64,000 nt of DNA, taken from contig CATNEN010000032.1 of NCBI GenBank assembly GCA_950097015.1, positions 930,001 to 994,000 of the forward strand. The letters run 5' to 3'. This document shows, one piece after another, positions 1,753 to 17,706 of the stretch. Under the pieces are notes generated by a model. That model saw nothing but the letters and a program-made list of their open reading frames with translations. It made no database searches and was not told where the DNA came from. The stretch is from Macrostomum hystrix. Taxonomy: Eukaryota; Animalia; Platyhelminthes. The position numbers were made by a program, and so were the translations under genes. Position 1 is the first letter of the stretch. Each line of letters starts with the position of its first letter.

Positions 1753-3440
1753 TTCTTAAGAAACTGGAAAAGCATAAATCAAAATTCTAATAAACCATGC
1801 AGAGATCTTAAAGCTACAATATATGGTTGCTAAAATCCAAAATATGATTATACATTTTACTAAGCTTTGAGCCAACACTTTTCAACACTTGATTCCCTAA
1901 CTGCATTCTGAATTTGAGACTGCGTTCTTTGTCAAGCATTTCGCAGCTAAATTAGTTTGAAGCTGGCCTAGACAGCGCAAGGCAGGAAGGACTGCCCACC
2001 CCAGCCCTAGTCACGTGCTGTAGCGCATGTTCGTGCATGTTAGTGCGCGTGCACTAGTGAAGAGGCAGAGTTAAATTAAAGTTCATTGACTGCTCCCTTC
2101 AAGGCATTTGCAAGATAACGAGGTGGTTACTAGCAGTGATATGAAAGGCTATAAAAAAACTACTAGATTTACAATGATGTTGGTTCAACATTACTCGTAT
2201 TCACAAAAAGAGAAAAATCTGCTTTTCTTTCTCGATCTTTGTTCGAAGCCAGAAAAGGCACAGACGGAACATGAATGCAGTTTCAGTTTCCATATTTCAA
2301 AAGAGAAAGTTTCGTACTAAGTTAAAAGCACAGAAAATCCACAGAATGCTCAATCGTTTATTTTGTCCTGTGTAGTTATGAGAAAAATAACATCAAGTTC
2401 ATTGTCAAATTGTCAAATTGTCAAATTCAAATTGTCAAATTGTCATATTTTTTCTTAAGTTGCTAACAATCTTAAGTTGCTCGTAACTCTTAAGAAACGA
2501 ATAGTTGTAAGTGCATTTGTTCCCTGAAAATCTGCCTTTCATAAACTTTCCAAGAAACGAAGTGTCCCGTCCTTGGGTTTATTGCAGTTCACAAGTATAG
2601 CCATAGAGTTTGTCCGAATATGAATGCAGTTTTATTGAACTTGATTGCAGAAATGACGAATTTGAGTGCGAGAAGGTGTAGTACTCCATTCTATTCTTTC
2701 CTCCATGTCCATCACACGCCAACAAATCGCGTCGACAATGTGCTGCTAACGACTGCAAGTCCTATGCTTCAGACTGTCCAACTGGGACGCGATTTCATTC
2801 CTTCCCGCATGGAAGGAATGAAATTTCCGTCTGTAGTGCACATGCCATCGTCTGTGATCAAGAAGCAACGCGATGGTAGACAATGAAGACGTTATTGCGG
2901 GCTTGCTCTGACTAATCTAAAATCACAGTGAAGTTAAATGATGGATCCGAAGAAATATTCTATTGAATTTGATGATTTAAACAGGAGAATGACTGCCAGT
3001 AGGAGCGATATTCTCGCCGTTGCCGATATTGAGGTGAAAAAGCCAGAACAGTTTAGATTGGTTCCAAAACTACAGTTTTGCCCCGGTGGCTCTCACGATT
3101 GGGAAGACAAGCGTTAGACTATGTCTGTGTACACTGTGCTATGCTCAACTATATTTTGTATTAAGCCTGAATCTACGAAGATATAAACTCGTAAATCAAT
3201 TTGCTGATATTTCTACTTAGTTGTTTCACCTAAAGAGTAGGATACTGAGAATTTTAATTCTGCATCACATCCCATAGACGATTGAGCATTCTGTGGATTT
3301 TTGAAAGCAAAAAATGTGTATAATTTATGAAATCGAAGCCAAATCGATTGAGGCTGTCAACCCAGCAGCCGCATAATTTTTCAGCAAGCGAGGAAAAGAT
3401 CGTTTGCTAAAGCTAATTCGGCATTCGGCAGCATCTCGAA

Positions 3441-4191
3441 ATGCCGCCAGTATCGAGGCGCCACTTGGCGTATCAGAACGATGGCGCCATCAATAACCAA
3501 TTTAAACAGCAGCCGACGATTCAGTACGTAGAAACTCAGAACCAGCTAAATCAGCATCATCACCGAGTCAACCAGGGAAGTCTATCAAGAAGGCGCCTGG
3601 AGCTGCTGCAGCCGCCGTCGCTGCAAGAGCATCATCACCATCTGCGCAGCTACCACAGCAACGCCAAGTCCAGCTCAGCTTCATCTAATGCTGCGGAGGC
3701 CGACTGGCAGTTTCAGCAGCCGCAGCCCTACCAGACCAATAGCAACGACCCGGAGGAGGAGGTCGACTACGACGAAAATGACTACGCGACAGCCGGAGCG
3801 AATAACAACGATGCCTGCTGCCGGTACACGTCGCGGTCGCCGCCGCGCCACTTTGGCCGACGCTATTCAGGCTCCGACCGCGAGTTTCCAGGCTCTATTC
3901 TGGAAACAGCGGGGGCGGCTGCGTCTCGTCAAGGCGCTGCACCGCTCCGAGTAAAAGCGCCTGCGGATTCGGCGGTAGCGGCGGCGGCGGCGGCGCCTGC
4001 ACAGTTGCGAGTGGTGGAAGCGCAGAAAGCAAAAATGGCAAGTCCCCGAAGGTGCACTTAGTCATTCAGGTTCTCGGCTGCTGCTGCAATGCCACAGGCA
4101 GCGCCGCTTCTGCTGGCGATCAGCCAAACGCGTGGGGACCACCAGCGCCTCCTTCGCAGTCAGCACCGCTGCTGCTGCCGCTGCTGCCGCC

Positions 4192-4222
<31 letters not shown>

Positions 4223-4453
4223 CCTCAGCCGCCGCCACAGCTAGCACCAATTCTGCACCACGCCACGCTCAGAAGAAACAAATGCCGGCTAAACTGGGGC
4301 GAGGTCAACAATTCGATCGGCAGCTTGGTCGGCGACGGCGGCTTCGAAGGCGGCAGCAGTAACGGCAGCCAGGTGTACCGGTTGAATCTTCCGTGCTGTT
4401 GTCAAGTAAACCCCAGTCGCAATGCCGAGTTAGAGAACGCTTTTAAGCGTTGA
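3441..4453 (+). CDS. Putative low-complexity (Q/H/P/G-rich) protein of unknown function, split across two overlapping frames
   Basis: ATG at 3441 opens a frame to 4061. A second frame is stop-free from 3806 to 4453 (GSGGGGACTVASGG...VHLVIQVLGCCC...poly-Pro...HHATLRRNK). GC-rich codon style resembles the other genes in the window, but no domain was recognised. Confidence 0.45.
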
Positions 4454-5717
4454 GTTGCTTGGCATAGTTTCTGCCCCAGACTCTCTATTTAAAAGAACTC
4501 AGCTGGCCATTTCGAGCGAATTCAGTTTTTTGCTATCCTCGACTGGGCCATGACGAACCGGCCGTGAAAACAAAAAGGCAGCAAGCAACAGTTCGCAAAG
4601 CAGCGAACTGCTTCTCCTGTTGCATAATATATATCTCTAGTTATCAATCAATATTTTACTGACCGTGAGAAGCTTGTTTGTTGGCTTTGGCTTTTTTGCC
4701 TTGACCCAAATAGAGGGGAAAATAGTACGACTGTATGTAGCTCAAGCTACTAAGAAATAAAAATGTTTAATGAGCATCCTGTCTTGTTTAGACAGTGGAC
4801 TAGCAGTGCCTTAGCTCGCTAAAAAAGTAAAGGACAAAATGTTATTGATCTGTGCTGGAGCTAGAGAATGGATGAATTAAATGCATAAAGCCCTGGAGAC
4901 AGAGTTGACGAACTGGGATCGGGAGAGAAACGGATGAGTTGATTGCGGAAAAATTGAGTAGCACGACCTCCTGTAAATCTAATAGCAAAAATGCCATCCT
5001 AATTAAGGCATTCGCTCGGGTTCTTTTTCATGAGATTAGTGAGTCGATGATTTCACTGGTCATGAATATGCAGTCAGTCAGATTCTTCTGAAACTCTACA
5101 TGGCCTGAAGGCTCCGTTCTATTAGACGATGCTTCCATGGTTAAAAGCCAGAAAGCTGACTGACACGGGACAGAAAAAGCAATGCCCCGCCCGGACGAAG
5201 CTCGCATGCACTACGCGGCTGTTAACAAATTTGTCCTGTCTCCACTGTTTCGCGTAGGATTGCCTTTCGATCACAAATGGATTTTGACAGACCCCGGGGA
5301 ATTCAGAGAGTTGTGATGGGCAGGTGGAATGGTCCAGGGAAAAACATAGACAATGGCAGAAGAACCAAACGGTCGCATCCAATCTCAGTTGCTGTCTTTC
5401 ACTGTTCGGCAGAGCTCTCGCGTGTGTCTGTATGTATTAGAAAAATGTATTGTTTGCACTATAGCCTTCAACTTGGCAAGTACGAACTCCTGGTGCTTGC
5501 TCTGTCTCATCTCTAGCTATTTCTCTTTCTCTTCTGCTATAATATGACTTCTCCGCGAGAACCTAGAGTCCTAGACGGAACCTGATTGGACAATCAGGCT
5601 CCGTATAACAGAATCAGCATACTTATGATGCCCTATTGAACCAGTAGCTCATACAACCAAAAGTAGATTTGCTAATCAATCGCAAACCAGAGCTCCGAAG
5701 TGGCAGCAGCAGCACAG

Positions 5718-8700
5718 ATGGAATTATCCCAGCTCTTGTCGCCGAGGGTTGTCGGTTCCGGCTACGACAACGGCAGTTCGGGCAGCACTGGCGGCAGTGG
5801 GCCATTTCTGGCTCTGCTGTATCCGGGTGAGAATGAAGTACAGAGTATTTTGAATATCATCAGAGTCCAGTGTCGTAGCCAGGATTTTTGTCTAGGGGGG
5901 CCGCGCCTTTTGGGGACGCCATGCTACCAGGGGGGGCGCCACTACTGGGGGGCGAAACTACTGGAGGGGGCGAAACTACTGGGGGGCGAAACTACTGGGG
6001 GGGGGCGAAACTACTGGAGGGGGGCGAAACTACTGGGGGGCGAAACTACTGGAGGGGGGGCGAAACTACTGGGGGGCGCCACTACTGGGGGGCGAAACTA
6101 CTGGGGGGGGCGAAACTACTGGGGGGGGCGAAACTACTGGGGGGCGAAACTACTGGGGGGCGAAACTACTGGGGGGCGAAACTACTGGGGGGCGAAACTA
6201 CTGGGGGGCGAAACTACTGGGGGGCGAAACTACTGGGGGGGGGCGAAACTACTGGGGGGCGAAAATACTGGGGGGCGAAAATACTGGGGGCGAAACTACT
6301 GGGGGGCGAAACTACTGGGGGGCGAAACTACTGGGGGCGGCGAAACTACTGGGGGGGGGCGAAACTACTGGGGGCGAAACTACTGGGGGCGCCACTACTG
6401 GGGGAGAGGCGCCACTACTGGGGGGCGCCACTACTGGGGGCGCCACTGCTCGTACTAATGGGGCACCACATAGTTTCGTCAGCCGATGGGGGTGCAGCGG
6501 CCTCCTTGCCCCCCGCCCCAGCCTGAGTCTGTGGGAAGTCCAGTCCTAATGCATCCGTTTTATTCCATTCAGAGATCGCAGTGCCCGGACTATCAATCCT
6601 AGTGCTGGGCTGCGTGTTTGGCTCCATCGGCAATGTCCTGGTCATCCTGGCTGTTGCATTGTGGAAGGTTTGCACGGACATTGATAAGCAGTGTTATAGA
6701 TTGTTATAAATGTTAACACTAGTTTATATCGTTTCTAGACTTAAATCTCGTCTGCTTTAGTATCAAGTTTAAAAGCTGCTAGTGCTGGCACAGGTACTCG
6801 TAGATGCTGGTGTTGGCACAGGTACTCGTAGATGCTGGTGTTGGCACAGGTACTCGTAGATGCTGGTGTTGGCACAGGTAGATGCTGGTGTTGGCACAGG
6901 TAGATGCTGGTGTTGGCACAGGTAGATGCTGGTGTTGGCACAGGTAGATGCTGGTGTTGGCATAGGTGGATGCTGGTGTTGGCACATGTAGATGCTGGTG
7001 TTGGCATAGGTGGATGCTGGTGTTGGCACAGGTAGATGCTGGTGTTGGCACATGTAGATGCTGGTGTTGGCACAGGTAGATGCTGGTGTTGGCACAGGTG
7101 GATGCTGGTGTTGGCACATGTAGATGCTGGTGTTGGCACATGTAGATGCTGGTGTTGGCATAGGTGGATGCTGGTGTTGGCACAGGTAGATGCTGGTGTT
7201 GGCATAGGTGGATGCTGGTGTTGGCACAGGTAGATGCTGGTGTTGGCACAGGTAGATGCTGGTGTTGGCACAGGTGGATGCTGGTGTTGGCACAGGTAGA
7301 TGCTGGTGTTGGCACAGGTGGATGCTGGTGTTGGCAAAGGTTGCATGAATGTCGCCCACCTGTTGATTGCAGCCGCTGCACACTGTTGGCAATGTTTTCG
7401 TTGTCAACCTCGCCATAGCCGATTTGCTAATCAAGATTTTCTCCGATCCGTTCGGAATAGTAGGTGAGCAGTGATTTATCATTTGCACTCTTTGCCAGCT
7501 CAAGGTGTGCTCGATTATCTACATACTTCTGTCTCACATTCTCCTATTTTTCTTCACATTTCACCTCACTAATTATCAACCGGGACACCATGAGTACACA
7601 CTCGTGAATGCCTGTCGGAATACTAATTTGGGACGAGTAGACAATTGTTATAATGTGTGCTTAAACACGATCGATAAGGCATTCCCTTCAGTTTTCGTAG
7701 AAATTAATTAATTAATTCACAACGACACCTAATTATGCAAGTTCATACGCTCGAAAGAAATGAATTATGGACCGCACAACCTTCTTCCATCACTAGTGTC
7801 TCGCTATCATCCCAATTACTGATTTCTCCCCACTCTGATTTCTCCCCACTCTGATTCCTCCCCACTCTGATTCCTCCCCACTCTGCTATCTCCCCACTCT
7901 GCTATCTCCCTACTCTGATTTCTCCCCACTCAGATTTCTCCCCACTCTGATTTCTCCCCACTCAGAGTTCTCCCCACTCAGAGTTCTCCTAAATCTGACC
8001 TATCTGTAGCAAAGTAAAATTGCAGCCTATCTGTAGCAAAGCGTCTAATTACGAGCATGTTACGAAACGACACCTAATTATGCAAGTTCATACGCTCGAA
8101 AGAACTGAATTATGGACCGCACAACCTTCTTCCATCACTAGTGTCTCGCTATCATCCCAATTACTGATTTCTCCCCACTCTGATTTCTCCCCACTCTGAT
8201 TCCTCCCCACTCTGATTCCTCCCCACTCTGCTATCTCCCTACTCTGATTTCTCCCCACTCTGATTTCTCCCCACTCTGCTATCTCCCCACTCTGATTTCT
8301 CCCCACTCAGAGTTCTCCTAAATCTGACCTATCTGTAGCAAAGTAAAATTGCAGCCTATCTGTAGCAAAGCGTCTAATTACGAGCATGTAAAATGCATTC
8401 AGGAAACTCATTCGCATGATAAAGATGCAGCAGACCAATATTCATTAGCAAATGCTTTTCGTTTCATCAGAGTGCTCAAGAGAGGCTGTAAGCTGTTCGT
8501 CAAGTCTCGACATCTCGTCATCTAGAGGTACAGTTATTAACTTGCACCGAAATATGGAATTAAATAAAGTGCAGCTGAACTAAAACACTTGCAATAGACA
8601 GGACTGACATTTTTACTGATGCAGAAATCAAATGCTAAATAAATATGAAAAGTGCTAGATTTGCTAAATCTGCATCATTGTTTCATTGTAAATTTACTAA

Positions 8701-11417: not shown

Positions 11418-13060
11418 CAGATTATCAGGTAGATTATGAATTATCAGGTAGATTATGGATTATCAGGTAGAATCTGGATTATCAAGTAGATTCTAGATTA
11501 TCAGGTAGATTCTGGATTATCAGGTAGATTCTGGATTATCAGGTAGATTCTAGATTATCAGTTAGATTCTGGATTATCAGGTAGAACTGGATAATCTGGA
11601 AGATTCTGGATTATCAGGTAGAATCTGGATTATCAAGTAGATTCTAGATTATCAGGTAGATTCTGGATTATCAGGCAGAACTGGATAATCTGGAAGATTC
11701 TGGATTATCAGGTAGAATCTGGATTATCAAGTAGATTCTAGATTATCAGGTAGATTCTGGATTATCAGGTAGAACTGGATAATCTGGAAGATTCTGGATT
11801 ATCAGGTAGAATCTGGATTATCAGGTAGATTCTGGATTATCAGGTAGATTCTAGATTATCAGGTAGATTATGGATTATCAGGTAGAATCTGGATTATCAA
11901 GTAGATTCTAGATTATCAGGTAGATTCTGGATTATAAGGTAGATTCTAGATTATCAGTTAGATTCTGGATTATCAGGTAGATCTGGATAATCTGGAAGAT
12001 TCTGGATTATCAGGTAGAATCAGGATTATCAAGTAGATTCTAGATTATCAGGTAGATTCAGGATTATCAGGTAGATTCTAGATTATCAGGTAGATTCTGG
12101 ATTATCAGGTAGATTCTGGATTATCTGGAAGATTCTGGATTATCAGGTAGATTCTGGATTATCAGGAAGATTCTGGATTATCAGGTAGATTCTGGATTAT
12201 CAGGTAGATTCTAGATTATCAGGTAGATTCTAGATTATCAGGTAGAATCTAGATTATCATGTAAAATCTAGATTATCAGGTAGATTCTGGATTATCAGGT
12301 AGATTCTGGATTATCTGGAAGATTCTGGATTATCAGGTAGATTCTGGATTATCAGGTAGAATCTGGATTATCAGGTAGATTCTGGATTATCAGGTAGATT
12401 CTGGATTATTAGGTAGAATCTAAATTATCATGTAAAATCTAGATTATCAGATAGATTCTGGATTATCAGGTAGATTCTGGATTATTAGGTAGATTCTAGA
12501 TTATCAGGTAGAATCTGGATTAACAGGTAAGTTCTGGATTATCAGATAGATTCTGGATTATCAGGTAGATTCTGGATTATCTGGAAGATTCTGGATTATC
12601 AGGTAGATTCTGGATTATCTGGTAGAATCTGGATTATCAGGTAGAATCTAGCTTATCAGGTAGAATCTGGATTATAAGGTAGAATCTGGATTGTCAGGTA
12701 GAATCTGGATTATCTGGAAGATTCTGGATTATCAGGTAGAATCTGGATTAACAGGTAAGTTCTGGATTATCAGATAGATTCTGGATTATCAGGTAGATTC
12801 TGGATTATCTGGAAGATTCTGGATTATCAGGTAGATTCTGGATTATCTGGTAGAATCTGGAATATCAGGTAGAATCTAGCTTATCAGGTAGAATCTGGAT
12901 TATAAGGTAGAATCTAGCTTATCAGGTAGAATCTAGCTTATCAGGTAGATTCCGGATTATCAGGTAGAATCTGGATTAACAGGTAAGTTCTGGATTATCG
13001 GGTTGGTTCTGGATTATCAAGTATGTTCTGGATTATCAGGTAGGTTTTATTATCAGGTGG
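11418..13060. repeat. 19-bp minisatellite (TCTGGATTATCAGGTAGAT)
   Basis: More than 80 tandem copies over ~1.65 kb. Confidence 0.96.
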
Positions 13061-13147
13061 GTTCTTGTTTGTAGGGTAGGTACCTTAATTACACCAGTCC
13101 AATTCGGCCAGATGTGGCCGAAAACGCAGCCGCAGCTGTTGCGCGGC

Positions 13148-15928
13148 CACAGTGCTCATGGGAAGTCAAAATGACACAAAAAATTGCCCAAGAAAATGAT
13201 TTTGTAAACCATATACCAGAGCACCTCGTATACCCAGAACAGGTTTTTTTTAAATCGTAAGTGCTTGTCCTAGCGTACAACAGACTTTTTATTTTGTTCG
13301 GCCAAAACAGGCTCTTAATTGCGACGTTGCTATGGGAAAAAACTTATTAAAATTGAATTAGTAAAAGCTTATGCATAGTAGTCTGTTTTAACAGCGTATT
13401 TTTTCAGAAAAAAATTGTCACTTATAACCTTAAAACATAAATGTGAGCTACACATGAAAGCCATTGTAAGCAACAACAGCTCGGAGCAGTTCGTTTGGGA
13501 AAGTGCTGTGCTGCATGGGCACAGCATATCGCTGCCATGTTAGAGCGAAATCCCGGTGCACGCTCTCGAAGGCTTGCTCGCTAAACGTGCCTAGTGGTCT
13601 CCCAGTGACGGCGCAGAATGTTCCCACGTGGTACAACAGCACATGCACTTTTGGGGAAATTGGCAAACCGATCAGCTCGTATGTGGCCTTGAACTGCGCG
13701 ATTCGGTCCTGGAAATCCGCGTGCAGTTCGGAGCCAAAGCAGCTGCTGACTACTGCATCAAAGCTCACCAGACAGGAGCCGTAGTGCTTCAGTTGCCGCG
13801 GCAGGCAATTCTGAAGCTCGGCAGATCGTCGAAGCAGAGTGCGACACGCGTTTCCCTCCATGCTGCCGCCGCGGTATCCTACACGCACAATGCTACGATC
13901 ATGCGCCCACTGATAAGCGCAGTTGTCACCCCACGCCGTGTTCAAAGCATCGAAAATGCGATTTGTGATGCCAAGCATCAGGTGCAGCTCTGGTGGAGGC
14001 AGAATGAAGAGAATTTCTGCGTCATCATCTGCCTGAAGCAGAGGAGCCTCGACGCAGTTGAAAAAATCCTTTGCAGTGTTTCGCACCTTGCCACTGCTGG
14101 CGAAATCCAGCGCCAGCTGCCGAATTCTGCCGATTGTCCGCACTGGACCGCAAGTGTCTAGCGGAACTGGAGTCTCGCAGTAGCAGCATGGATGCCTGGA
14201 CGCATGCGATTGCAGTCCACAGATGAGATTGGCAACTTTCATATCGGCGGCTACTGCATTCACTGTGATGCCTCCAAGGCTCAAGAGCTGGAAGAGTGCC
14301 TTTATATTGTCGTAAGACTCGGCCATGTCGGGCACAGCAGCAAGCAGCAGCAGCTTCTTGACTCCAGAATCGGCAAAAAATTTGTGCTTGGTCGACTGAT
14401 TTGGTTCGCTCTCACTTCGAGGTAGTAAGCTGACACAGATCTTGAAGAACTCGCCACCTCCGTCAAGTCCAAGCTTCACATCGATATTGTCGTGACCTCT
14501 TTCAAAAGCAACCTTTTCGATTAAGCCTTGAACATCATTGCAAACGACAGCAATTTTTGAACCTTCGCTATCCACTTTCAGCAGACTGTGCACAAAAAAT
14601 CTTCCAGATGCCGACTTCTTACTGCGAGACTCGCTCCCAAGTTCGATTGTACAGCCTTTACTGTGCCGGCTCCCATCCGCAAGATGCTAGCCGCTCGTAG
14701 AGTTTGCCTGTTGCTCAGATTGAGTGCGACTTTCAGTTGAAGCATCGTGGCTGTGGTCGCTTGAGCCAATTGTCCTGAGCTGCTGGCTGCTTCCACACAG
14801 TGACCCACAGTGACAGCCAGAGGCCTGCCTCCATGTGGTCTTTTCAAAGTCACTGTGCTAGATCCGGCTGCTTGCAGCTTGGCAGCGATTTCGGTGCTGG
14901 CCACTTGCTCTGTCGTTCCAGGGCTCAGCTGGGTGCTCAAGTTAATCAGCCGCGTCGCCTTGTTGCAGCGATGAGTCTTTCCTTTACCAATGGGCGAGTG
15001 GCAGCCAGAACACAGCCGTTCAGGAGTCTGAGGTGCATCGCCGCAAGATGATGGTCGGCCCCTCGTACAGTTTGGCGAACTAGTTGCATAGATACTGCAT
15101 GGATCTGAGTTTTTGTGCAGGTTGCTGCGAGCAATCCTGCAGATCTCACATGGGCAGTCGGGCTGTGATCTTCTGCTGACTGGGATGCTGCTCAAGTCTT
15201 TAAGCATTTGCTCGTAGAGAAGTCTTGGCGGCAAAGGACGAGGCGATGGGCCAGCTAGCGAAGACACGATTCGGCGACAGCCCTCACACACTCCAGCAGG
15301 AAGAAAATGCTGCACAGATGAGAAGTTTGGCAGGATGTAGTGCTCAATCGCTGCTGCATCGTTTACACAGCGCTCAGCCTTGCGTAGGCAAAGCAGGCAC
15401 ACACTACGAAGGCACTCATCGTGGCTCTTTGGGCTGTTGGGCATTTTTCTGAATTCGAATAGAACGTTTGAGCTATGCATAGATGCAAGGAACAATTTAT
15501 GTCACAGGACTGACAATATCAGACTTTATTTTCAAGTGAGGTGACTAGCCGCATATGTACAGTGCTTTCTACAACTTTGTACACTGCCATATCACATCTG
15601 TGATGCATCACACAAAAGTCATGATACAATCTCAGCAGTCAATATTTATTGTACTTTTTCCTGCCGTCCCTAATCAAAACTAAATACTCTGTGCATTGCA
15701 GGATCAGCATAAAATACTAAAAAGATGGGAATGCTTCATTTTTCGTTGCAACTTCACAATAAAGGACCTGTTTAAGCTGAATAAAATAAAAAGTCTGTTG
15801 TACGCTAGGACAAGCACTTACGATTAAAAAAACCTGTTCTGGGTATACGAGATGCTCTGGTATATGGTTTACAAAATCATTTTCTTGGGCAATTTTTTGT
15901 GTCATTTTGACTTCCCATGAGCACTGTG
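13148..15928 (-). mobile_element. Chapaev/Transib-related (RAG1-like) DNA transposon, 2781 bp
   Basis: TIRs of ~145 bp are near-identical (13148-~13294 and ~15785-15928) with ~45 bp of further degenerate similarity. Both begin CACAGTGCTCATGGGAAGTCAAAATGACACAAAAAAT. CGCGGC flanks both sides (13142-13147, 15929-15934). Contains the transposase ORFs. Confidence 0.92.
13448..15444 (-). CDS. Chapaev/RAG1-like DDE transposase, interrupted by one -1 frameshift at ~14594-14599
   Basis: N-terminal Chapa/RAG1-N-like zinc motifs: H-x7-CLLC, P-x3-CEGC, CPCEIC. Core motifs: KLGLDGGG (D), AADMK (D), HPCCYC, PELHLMLG, MEGNACRTLL (cf. RAG1 MNGNFARKLM), KVHVLLYH (H-x4-H), SEQAFESVH (E). One extra T in the T6 run would give an uninterrupted frame (EDFFVHSL). 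The start Met (15444 or 15480) is uncertain. Confidence 0.88.
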
Positions 15929-17706
15929 CGCGGCGCATCTGAAGGCTGCTTACAGCTTAACCGCTTCACAGCTGGGTGAACTCAAGTAGCCCAGAGTTGA
16001 TTGCCTTTTTAAGGGACACAAATTGTTGCAGTGGAGTCGGGAATCGAACCGCAGATGTATGTTCAGAAAAGACCATAGACAGGATCAGAAAGTTAGCGCC
16101 AGACTCAAGTCTTACTGAGCAAGAAGCCTTCTAAGAGGCTGGGAATGCCGAATCACATTACGGCCCGCAGCTGTATCGGTTTTCATAGTAGATATTATCC
16201 GATTGCTGCTTACACGGATCGATAAGTCTGCAGACCGCGCTTTTTTCAGACTCAAACTTCAAACAGAACCCCAGGGAAATGCTCGTCTGATCATTCCCGC
16301 TAGTCAGAGGTAACGTAGAGCTATGCTAGAGAAAGATAATACGCTGGTAATAAAAAAATGACCAAGCAAATCAACGATAAATTTCTCCCAATATTACTTA
16401 TTATCTCATCATTGCACCTGAATAGAAAAATAATGAATTCGAGGCAATAAACAATGTTCACCATGGCAGCACATGTTTATTAAAAAAAACGAACAAGCTT
16501 TTGTTAAACTTTTGCTACCTAGACATATTTATTGACTCCGGCCAGGTAAGCAGGTAGCAGACACACAAACACGCAGAGACAGAGAAAAAACATGATTTGA
16601 CAAACACTAAGCACTGCTCCGCATTGTAAATGCAGGTGCGCTGACACGTAGAAATATGGCTGCATGGCGGTAACTGCCTTCAATCAAACAGCCTTCAATG
16701 CCAATTCAAGTTGAATTATAGAACTGATAACTGCTCCACTGAACAGTAGAATGACAGACGACAAGCAAGCGAATTTCTATTATTATAACTATTATTAATT
16801 GCCAGAAAAAAATTATTAACAGTTTAACTGCGGCGACAGCTGCCATTGCGGGTGCGAGGTTGAGAGATAAAGCATCATAAGTTTGTTGTTGGGTGAACCT
16901 TTAGAAACATTTACAACAATGCAACCAAATTACTGGGCTGGGACTAATGATATACCATCAGAATTGCTGAAATAGATAGCCGATTGATTGCACAGATGTG
17001 ATCATACTACTTACAGAATTTGTAAGTAGTATTTCAAGGCTGTTGTGATCATTGAATAAATATTAACAGCGTACTGGCAACCTTAGAAACACGAATTCAC
17101 ACCTTTGGTGGTGCAAAACACACAATATCCACTTTAACGGGGGGGAATCTAAAAAAAATCAGAACGTGAATAATTTATTATAATTAAACAATACCCAGAA
17201 TTCGGAATCCCATCCGTAAAAGTACAAGTGATAAATATTACCCTAAAATAGGAATTTTAATCCAACATAGACAGTACGAGTTAATTATTTGCCAAATAAG
17301 TAGTACAAAATTAAAATTATGCTCCTAACCTAGGGCTTATACCCCAGAAGTATAAATATATATGTAAAGGTTCTATTGTACATCTCCATTAAGAAGCTTG
17401 AATTAAAAATGTAGATTTTTTCATACTATATATACAATTTTCCCTTCTATGTGGAGTTTTTCAATTCTAACATTCTACTGATCCAGTGAGTAATATGGTC
17501 ACAGATTTTATACAGACACAAGGTGATGGTAAAAACGTACAGCCTGGTAATAAGGTGCCACCTCTTTTGTTTAAAACACGTTAAAACCGACAGTTAAAAC
17601 AGACAGAAACGATTTCAAGACAAGCCGGCACGACAACTGGGACGGGACATAAAAAAATAACTAAAACATATGCTATCTAGCCAATCAAGATCTTGTCGAA
17701 ATCATT

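Follow-up and report, generated by a model that had tools for sequence, protein, structure and literature searches.

The element described here occupies positions 13148–15928 (2,781 bp) of a 64,000-nucleotide stretch of the Macrostomum hystrix genome (contig CATNEN010000032.1, positions 930,001 to 994,000 of the forward strand), hereafter the window. We interpret it, with a probability of roughly 0.8, as an autonomous cut-and-paste transposon of the Chapaev group (CMC superfamily), recently inserted and belonging to a multi-copy, probably still active lineage whose family is uncatalogued above 54% identity. The assignment to Chapaev follows from the catalytic motifs, the CAC..GTG ends, an N-terminal Chapa domain and the presence of a single gene; the family is a new one of a known kind rather than a new branch of RAG1. 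Within this multi-copy family, some members of which are frame-intact, the window element is a young copy with slight damage. The original prediction, made from the letters of the window, had called it a complete single-gene transposon of "Chapaev/Transib type" that joins a Chapa-like zinc domain to a RAG1-like DDE core. The single gene, the zinc domain and the core fold are all borne out, as is the Chapaev half of that label, whereas the Transib half does not hold by sequence (no RAG1 Pfam match, profile E-values of 0.045–0.4, and 4-bp target-site duplications in the relatives).

The features of the element are given below in window coordinates. The labels X1, X2, X5, and X8 denote contigs from public sequencing runs of the same organism, X5 being a metagenome run.

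13142–13147, no strand: left flanking direct repeat CGCGGC, an apparent 6-bp target-site duplication (flank reading)
13148–13339, plus strand: left terminal inverted repeat (TIR), ~190 nt (arm alignment; X1 contigs break exactly at 13147/13148)
13148–13154, plus strand, mirrored at 15922–15928: terminal heptamer CACAGTG, read directly at both ends
13176–13190, plus strand, mirrored at 15886–15900: nonamer-like A-tract block ACAAAAAATTGCCCA, end positions 29–43, its position kept in relatives
13448–15444, minus strand: transposase gene (ATG at 15444–15442, stop at 13450–13448), its frame broken at ~14593–14600; 665 codons in intact copies
13451–14595, minus strand: DDE catalytic core with a RAG1-like fold (family conservation, profile alignment, AlphaFold2 model, and Foldseek)
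14462–14464, 14243–14245, and 13565–13567, minus strand: core residues D75, D148, and E374, numbered in the 13451–14686 frame, which also holds C167/C170, L234-H235, and H348/H353
14965–15012, minus strand: C2HC zinc finger (C145, C148, H158, C160), invariant in 34 of 34 members
15052–15063, minus strand: AT-hook-like motif RGRP, residues 128–131 (G in 26, R in 23, and P in 24 of 34 members)
15130–15444, minus strand: two-zinc Chapa domain, residues 1 to ~105, with ligands H8 + C97/C99/C102 and C16/C19/C53/C56 (type I pattern)
15739–15928, minus strand: right TIR (arm alignment)
15929–15934, no strand: right flanking direct repeat CGCGGC (flank reading)

Transposase gene and protein

The one gene of the element lies on the minus strand, and the 2.78 kb between the ends leave room for no second gene; no RAG2-like gene is adjacent to it within the element. 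In the window copy the gene is split over two frames (14581–15495 and 13451–14686), the first with the likely ATG at 15444, the second running open from 14686 until its stop at 13448. The two pieces are collinear with homologs of ~660–700 aa, the frame switch falling between ...RHLEDF and HSLLKV..., and exact-protein look-ups of both window open reading frames returned no record. One more A follows 14593 (plus strand) in every X1 and X2 contig and in part of X5, and with it the gene reads as one 665-codon frame. A homopolymer error was considered as the cause of the frameshift and rejected, since the base is missing from a site immediately beyond the A6 run and X8 also has the shorter form; the break is more likely a real 1-bp deletion. 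The window copy cannot make full-length transposase, although its ends are intact and it could be mobilized by the transposase of a sister copy.

In the catalytic core, 42 family members were compared, and D75, D148, C167/C170, L234-H235, H348/H353, and E370/E374 proved either invariant or conserved to at least 90%; this series, D-D-C(2)C-LH-H(4)H-E, is the Chapaev/CMC signature, common to Transib and RAG1 (PMC4079192; PMC12730594). By this conserved signature, the core is that of a Chapaev transposase. The CxxC, LH..LG, MEGNACR, H-x4-H, and catalytic E motifs that had been singled out in the window protein are all present, conserved in the family, and aligned with RAG1 and RAG1-like (RAG1L) proteins.

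Sequence models recognize little of this core. Pfam gave no match on either window frame, and across the 42 + 34 relatives it identified no core family, only weak matches to zf-AD and DUF1280 and one to RAG1_imp_bd; the RAG1 core model of Pfam was matched neither by the window protein nor by the 42 relatives. A single-sequence search of the PDB returned spurious PARP14 matches only, and the best PDB matches of the family profile are amphioxus RAG1L (6b40, E 0.045) and RAG1 (3jbw, 0.17; 6dbi, 0.41). In the profile alignment to RAG1L and RAG1, all motifs are in register (MEGNACR vs. MNGNYAR), the distance from the second D to CxxC is 19 residues in the family and in RAG1/RAG1L alike, and the core aligns to the D708 region, C727/C730, H937/H942, and the E962 region of RAG1.

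The AlphaFold2 model of the core [predicted local distance difference test score (pLDDT) 89.3, predicted template modeling score (pTM) 0.87] matches the fold of both RAG1 and HzTransib, a comparison that the original prediction had called for. In a Foldseek search against solved structures, the best 49 matches are all RAG1, BbRAGL, or HzTransib [6cg0_A, E 4.6e-10, template modeling score (TM) 0.67; 6b40_A, E 1.2e-6; 6pqx_A, E 1.7e-6], and Hermes comes next at E 3e-3. To our knowledge no structure of a CMC transposase has been solved, so RAG1 stands at the top of the PDB ranking partly by default. Among AlphaFold Database clusters, kin from Macrostomum lignano come first (TM 0.9) and RAG1 is found at rank 28, with about two dozen unnamed proteins from nematodes, cnidarians, a sea urchin, a red alga, and fungi between them. 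A search of the Atlas with the core returned cnidarian hypothetical proteins, DUF1280, RAG1_RNase_H, and Transposase_21.

In the N-terminal region, the ligand columns H8, C16, C19, C53, C56, C97, C99, and C102 are conserved in 28–33 of 34 aligned N-termini, and the H+3C and 4C pattern, in which a CxxC...CxxC module provides four ligands while one His on the N-terminal side and three Cys on the C-terminal side provide the others, is the type I scheme of the Chapa domain in Chapaev and of the RAG1 N-terminal zinc domain (bioRxiv 10.64898/2026.01.24.700457). In the Atlas, the named clusters lying nearest to residues 1–112 bear PF12560 RAG1_imp_bd (scores 0.91–0.92, 184–191 shared features), and zf-AD is matched by 10 of the 34 members; the ZAD has been linked to the first zinc module (bioRxiv 10.64898/2026.01.24.700457). 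Ligand columns, PF12560 clusters, and zf-AD matches together identify this region as a Chapa domain, which consists of two interdigitated zinc fingers and resembles the RAG1 NZD. It is followed by the AT-hook-like motif, the C2HC finger, and, downstream of the finger, a helical region.

A search of 5.8 billion proteins returned 65 relatives, the best of which are 680-aa hypothetical proteins of M. lignano at 50–54% identity. The family is new in that it has at most 54% protein identity to anything catalogued. It is also very large: a profile of 42 members retrieved 11,737 cluster representatives at E ≤ 1e-3, with 1,761 still retrieved at E ≤ 1e-30.

Ends, insertion site, and copies

The element is bounded by inverted repeats of ~190 nt each. 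These comprise outer arms (13148–13250 and 15826–15928, 103 nt) that are 99% complementary and inner arms (13246–13339 and 15739–15832, 94 nt) that are 85% complementary. An exact search of the 64-kb window for the terminal 42 nt finds two occurrences, one at each end, against a chance expectation of 0. The junctions read ...TGCGCGGC followed by CACAGTG on the left, and CACTGTG followed by CGCGGCGC... on the right, and these are the invariable CAC...GTG termini of Chapaev elements.

Outside these termini, identical bases directly adjoin both ends only at a length of 6, giving the CGCGGC repeat, and lengths of 2–5 and 7 fail; a 4-bp duplication is ruled out for the window copy by the mismatch between CGGC and CGCG. 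The window contains no paralogous copy of the flanks that could represent an empty site, and no contig in the four runs connects 13147 to 15935. Two joints, from 13147 to 16010 and from 13147 to 16014, were examined as possible empty sites and rejected, as both run into a hyper-abundant repeat. In the literature searched, no 6-bp duplication is reported for Chapaev or CMC elements. Duplication length is labile among close relatives of Transib (bioRxiv 10.64898/2026.08.26.747230), and a 6-bp duplication, if confirmed, would add to this recent evidence of lability in the clade.

The insertion is considered young because only ~5 substitutions (among them 13633, 13672, 14891, and 15511) and one 1-bp deletion separate the window copy from the consensus of the many copies, in agreement with the age first proposed for it. 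The X1 contigs end exactly at the element boundary, and X1 also contains a second subfamily copy, ~7% diverged (22 differences and a 2-bp deletion in 324 nt, 13878–14203), at about one fifth of the main depth. In X8, a TIR variant with 9 differences in 129 nt (13148–13285/15783–15928 region) has a depth six times that of the full element and sits beside a different flank (...AATCGCATCG followed by CACAGTG), and one contig joins 13285 to 15783, TIR to TIR. The variant and the joint hint at non-autonomous, internally deleted derivatives.

Several points weigh against the interpretation given at the outset. Membership in Chapaev is assigned by defining features and not by a tree. The model of the N-terminal domain (pLDDT 87.5) has no significant Foldseek match; RAG1 (~103–260) is first in Swiss-Prot at E 0.45, and ZAD structures rank high in the PDB. 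The 6-bp repeat comes from a single insertion for which no empty site was found, the duplications of the relatives being 4 bp, and published duplications measure 3–4 bp for Chapaev, 2–4 bp for CMC, and 2–5 bp for CMCT elements, as against 6 bp in the window copy (PMC4079192; bioRxiv 10.64898/2026.08.26.747230; PMC12730594). Lastly, contig word depth is a poor and rough measure of copy number, and it is on this scale that the element stands at 360–430 in X1, compared with 71 for the unique right flank (~6-fold), and at ~8–9 in X2, compared with 4.6–4.9 for the flank.

To the right of the insertion, the stretch at ~15950–16174 has a word depth of 58,000–104,000 in X1 and of 1,800–4,300 in X5, loose contig ends are abundant at 16010–16050, and the minus strand of the stretch carries GGTTCGATTCCCGACTCCACTGCA, which resembles the 3' end of a tRNA; ARAGORN tRNA and Rfam searches of this repeat gave no match. 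The stretch is probably a very abundant repeat resembling a short interspersed nuclear element, and the transposon may have inserted into or beside a copy of it. To the left, a 19-bp satellite (consensus GATTATCAGGTAGATTCTG; 86.6 copies, 86% match) extends over 11420–13058 and ends ~90 bp from the insertion site.

Bipartite ends and their likeness to recombination signals

At both ends, the CACAGTG heptamer is followed after a 21-nt spacer by ACAAAAAAT (end positions 29–37), which matches the nonamer of the V(D)J recombination signal sequence (RSS) at 7 of 9 positions. The original prediction had drawn attention to exactly this arrangement, and also to the symmetry of the ends and the absence of RAG2; each of these statements agrees with our reading, as the two ends have an identical layout, with no 12/23 asymmetry, and the element holds one gene. 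Of random window positions, 1.2% have a nonamer match of at least 7/9 at RSS-like spacing, so that such a match is weak alone; it carries weight because the block is conserved in relatives. The ends of these relatives are as follows.

M. lignano L001: terminus CACGGTTAGG..., duplication GAGC
M. lignano L002–L006: terminus CACGGTTGGG..., duplications ATCT, TTGC, AACC, and CTCG, and one mismatched pair
L043: terminus CACAGTGCTC..., duplication TGAA
L044: terminus CACACTGCC..., duplication TGCC/TGCT
L031: terminus CACGGGT..., with AAAAAAATTGCCCA

Among the metagenome loci, many contigs stop inside the TIRs, and usable ends come only from L031, L043, and L044. At L043, a Tc1/mariner-type transposase gene (DDE_3, HTH_Tnp_Tc3_2; 5326–6354) lies ~450 bp past the right end of the related element. 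In four related families, seven insertions are consistent with a 4-bp duplication, with a mismatch in one case. The heptamers of the relatives are CACGGTT, CACAGTG, CACACTG, and CACGGGT, and in a CAC-anchored alignment of six families, CAC-GT at positions 1–6, an A-run at 33–36, T38, and CCA at 41–43 are common to all, while positions 8 to ~30 are not conserved. Because the A-run, T38, and CCA keep their distance from the terminus in six families, the nonamer-like block is part of a positionally conserved subterminal element, and conservation of the block across relatives, on which the first proposal had been staked, is found. The A-tract block is probably a transposase-binding site.

These features suggest a mechanism, in which we infer both the pairing of protein domains with DNA elements and the cleavage chemistry. 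Intact copies would encode one 665-aa transposase composed of the Chapa domain, the AT-hook, the C2HC finger with its helical region, and the DDE core; the Chapa domain would be a homolog of the RAG1 N-terminal zinc domain, and the core is predicted to be an RNase-H-like DDE fold into which, as is also the case in RAG1 and Transib, the zinc-binding modules C(2)C and H(4)H are inserted. A transposase dimer may engage each ~190-nt end through two elements, the terminal CAC(A/G)GT heptamer, as the presumed cleavage site, and the A-tract block (AAAA-T-NN-CCA) ~25 nt further inward. The A-tract is probably read by the AT-hook, which sits between the Chapa domain and the C2HC finger, together with the N-terminal fingers. 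In RAG1, the GGRPR motif of the nonamer-binding domain contacts the A-tract of the nonamer, and the proposed contact would be its parallel. The D-D-E triad would excise the element at the CAC end, and reinsertion would take place with a short staggered cut, its length being 4 bp for the relatives and, it appears, 6 bp for the window copy.

Tentatively, the bipartite end could be ancestral, held in common with Transib TIRs and V(D)J signals (a spacer of ~23–25 nt and an A-tract read by an AT-hook), with 6-bp duplications typical of the family; we regard this combination as possible and rather doubtful. If the bipartite end were ancestral, the grammar of heptamer, spacer, and nonamer would be older than the split between Chapaev and Transib/RAG, and 6-bp duplications, if true of the family, would widen the span of duplication lengths recorded in the CMC/Transib clade.

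Less probable than this is that the RSS likeness is coincidental, with CAC alone constrained and the A-rich block being ordinary AT-rich subterminal sequence. The 1.2% frequency of comparable matches speaks for such a coincidence, as do the differences at heptamer positions 4–7 among relatives and the recurrence of AAAATGA-type motifs elsewhere in the TIR arm (positions 21 and 46). It is opposed by the fixed distance of the A-run (33–36), T38, and CCA (41–43) in six families whose transposases are 40–55% identical, and by the lack of conservation in the sequence between the heptamer and the block, which make a chance resemblance unlikely.

A shade more improbable still is a distinct lineage, intermediate between Chapaev and Transib/RAG, whose ends are homologous to the RSS and which would be informative for the origin of RAG1. 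The exact CACAGTG at both ends and in the relative L043 would fit such a lineage, as would the conserved A-tract block after a variable spacer of ~23–25 nt, the conserved AT-hook (which recalls the GGRPR of the RAG1 nonamer-binding domain), the higher score of RAG1 than of HzTransib among solved structures, and the resemblance of the N-terminus to the RAG1 N-terminal zinc domain. However, the protein traits all lie within the published description of Chapaev, there is no match to RAG1 in Pfam and the sequence E-value is marginal (0.045–0.4), and RAG1 is the best PDB match by default, many unnamed AlphaFold Database proteins being closer. The duplications of the relatives are moreover 4 bp and not 5 bp, the ends are symmetrical with no 12/23 asymmetry, and an A-tract beside an AT-hook protein can arise by convergence. 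The idea that the element is an unusual mixture of Chapaev and Transib traits, and a special new branch for the origin of RAG1, is not sustained: the traits in question are the published definition of Chapaev, and many unnamed CMC-like proteins are structurally closer to it than RAG1 is.

That the element is a domesticated or dead single-copy relic is highly improbable: the frame of the window copy is indeed broken, yet its TIRs are near-perfect and flanked by a duplication, the depth of the element is raised ~6-fold with frame-intact copies in X1 and X2, and X8 has TIR variants beside other flanks and a possible TIR-to-TIR joint.

Comparison with known systems

We know of no Chapaev or other CMC transposase that has been characterized biochemically or structurally, and this family, being young and multi-copy, with copies whose frame is intact and with long, clearly defined ends, offers a practical entry point for CMC biochemistry. 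The conserved heptamer, spacer, and A-tract, together with the AT-hook, also allow the RSS-like architecture to be judged as either older than RAG/Transib or convergent. In other respects the element is an unremarkable representative of a transposon group that is large and widespread, and its likenesses and differences with respect to known systems are set out below.

RAG1 and the RAG1-like protein of ProtoRAG (PDB 6cg0, 4wwx, and 6b40) provide the best matches among solved structures (E 4.6e-10, TM 0.67), with a shared fold of RNase H and ZnC2/ZnH2, aligned catalytic and zinc motifs, a zinc domain of matching type at the N-terminus, and a heptamer identical to that of the RSS, CACAGTG. In contrast, sequence identity is 12–15%, and the element has no RAG2 partner, no RING/ZDD, and no recognizable nonamer-binding domain. 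The window element is also symmetrical-ended and mobile, whereas RAG1 is a host gene that acts with a 12/23 pair.

Transib, represented by HzTransib (PDB 6pqn and 6pqx), shares the core fold (E 1.7e-6, TM 0.56), a DDE domain with CxxC and H-x-H zinc modules, and a single gene. Its ends likewise consist of a CAC-type heptamer, a spacer, and an A-rich nonamer-like block, which is a resemblance of layout and not demonstrated homology. Unlike the element, Transib lacks the Chapa/NZD domain, there is no significant sequence similarity between the two, and the Transib duplication is typically 5 bp, as against 6 bp in the window copy and 4 bp in its relatives.

Chapaev3 elements, including N-RAG-TP of Aplysia, have the Chapa domain and CAC ends in common with the element. 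They insert between A and T with a 3-bp duplication, TWA (PMC4079192; PMC3014272), unlike the CGCGGC found here and the varied 4-bp duplications of the relatives, and their TIRs are 11–19 nt long, compared with ~190 nt.

The closest relatives are the M. lignano proteins P0001 and P0002 (680 aa), encoded by elements L001–L006, which share the full-length architecture at 50–54% core identity. These elements are likewise multi-copy with intact frames, and their ends carry CACGGTT followed by an A-run and TGCC(C)A at positions 30–44. They differ in the heptamer, CACGGTT rather than CACAGTG, and in their 4-bp duplications.

Chapaev transposons were reportedly described by Kapitonov and Jurka in 2007 within the CMC superfamily, Chapaev-2_BF being one example. 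A bipartite end of heptamer, spacer, and A-tract block is not described for Chapaev in the literature searched, a search with the original Repbase Reports outside its scope, so that an earlier description is possible; in the one paper found to use both "Chapaev" and "heptamer," the heptamer is the terminal heptamer of Transib only, with nothing on Chapaev ends. The group is defined by the Chapa domain, CAC..GTG ends, and a C(2)C/H(4)H core common to Transib and RAG1 (PMC4411706; PMC4079192; PMC12730594; bioRxiv 10.64898/2026.01.24.700457), and Kapitonov and Koonin place it, as one clade, in a broadly drawn Transib superfamily (PMC4411706). The element departs from known Chapaev in the 6-bp flanking repeat of the window copy and in its identity of at most 54% to any catalogued protein. 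It agrees with Chapaev in carrying a single gene, that of the transposase, between CAC..GTG termini, in the C(2)C, LH, and H(4)H motifs of its DDE core, and in the 4-bp duplications of its closest relatives.

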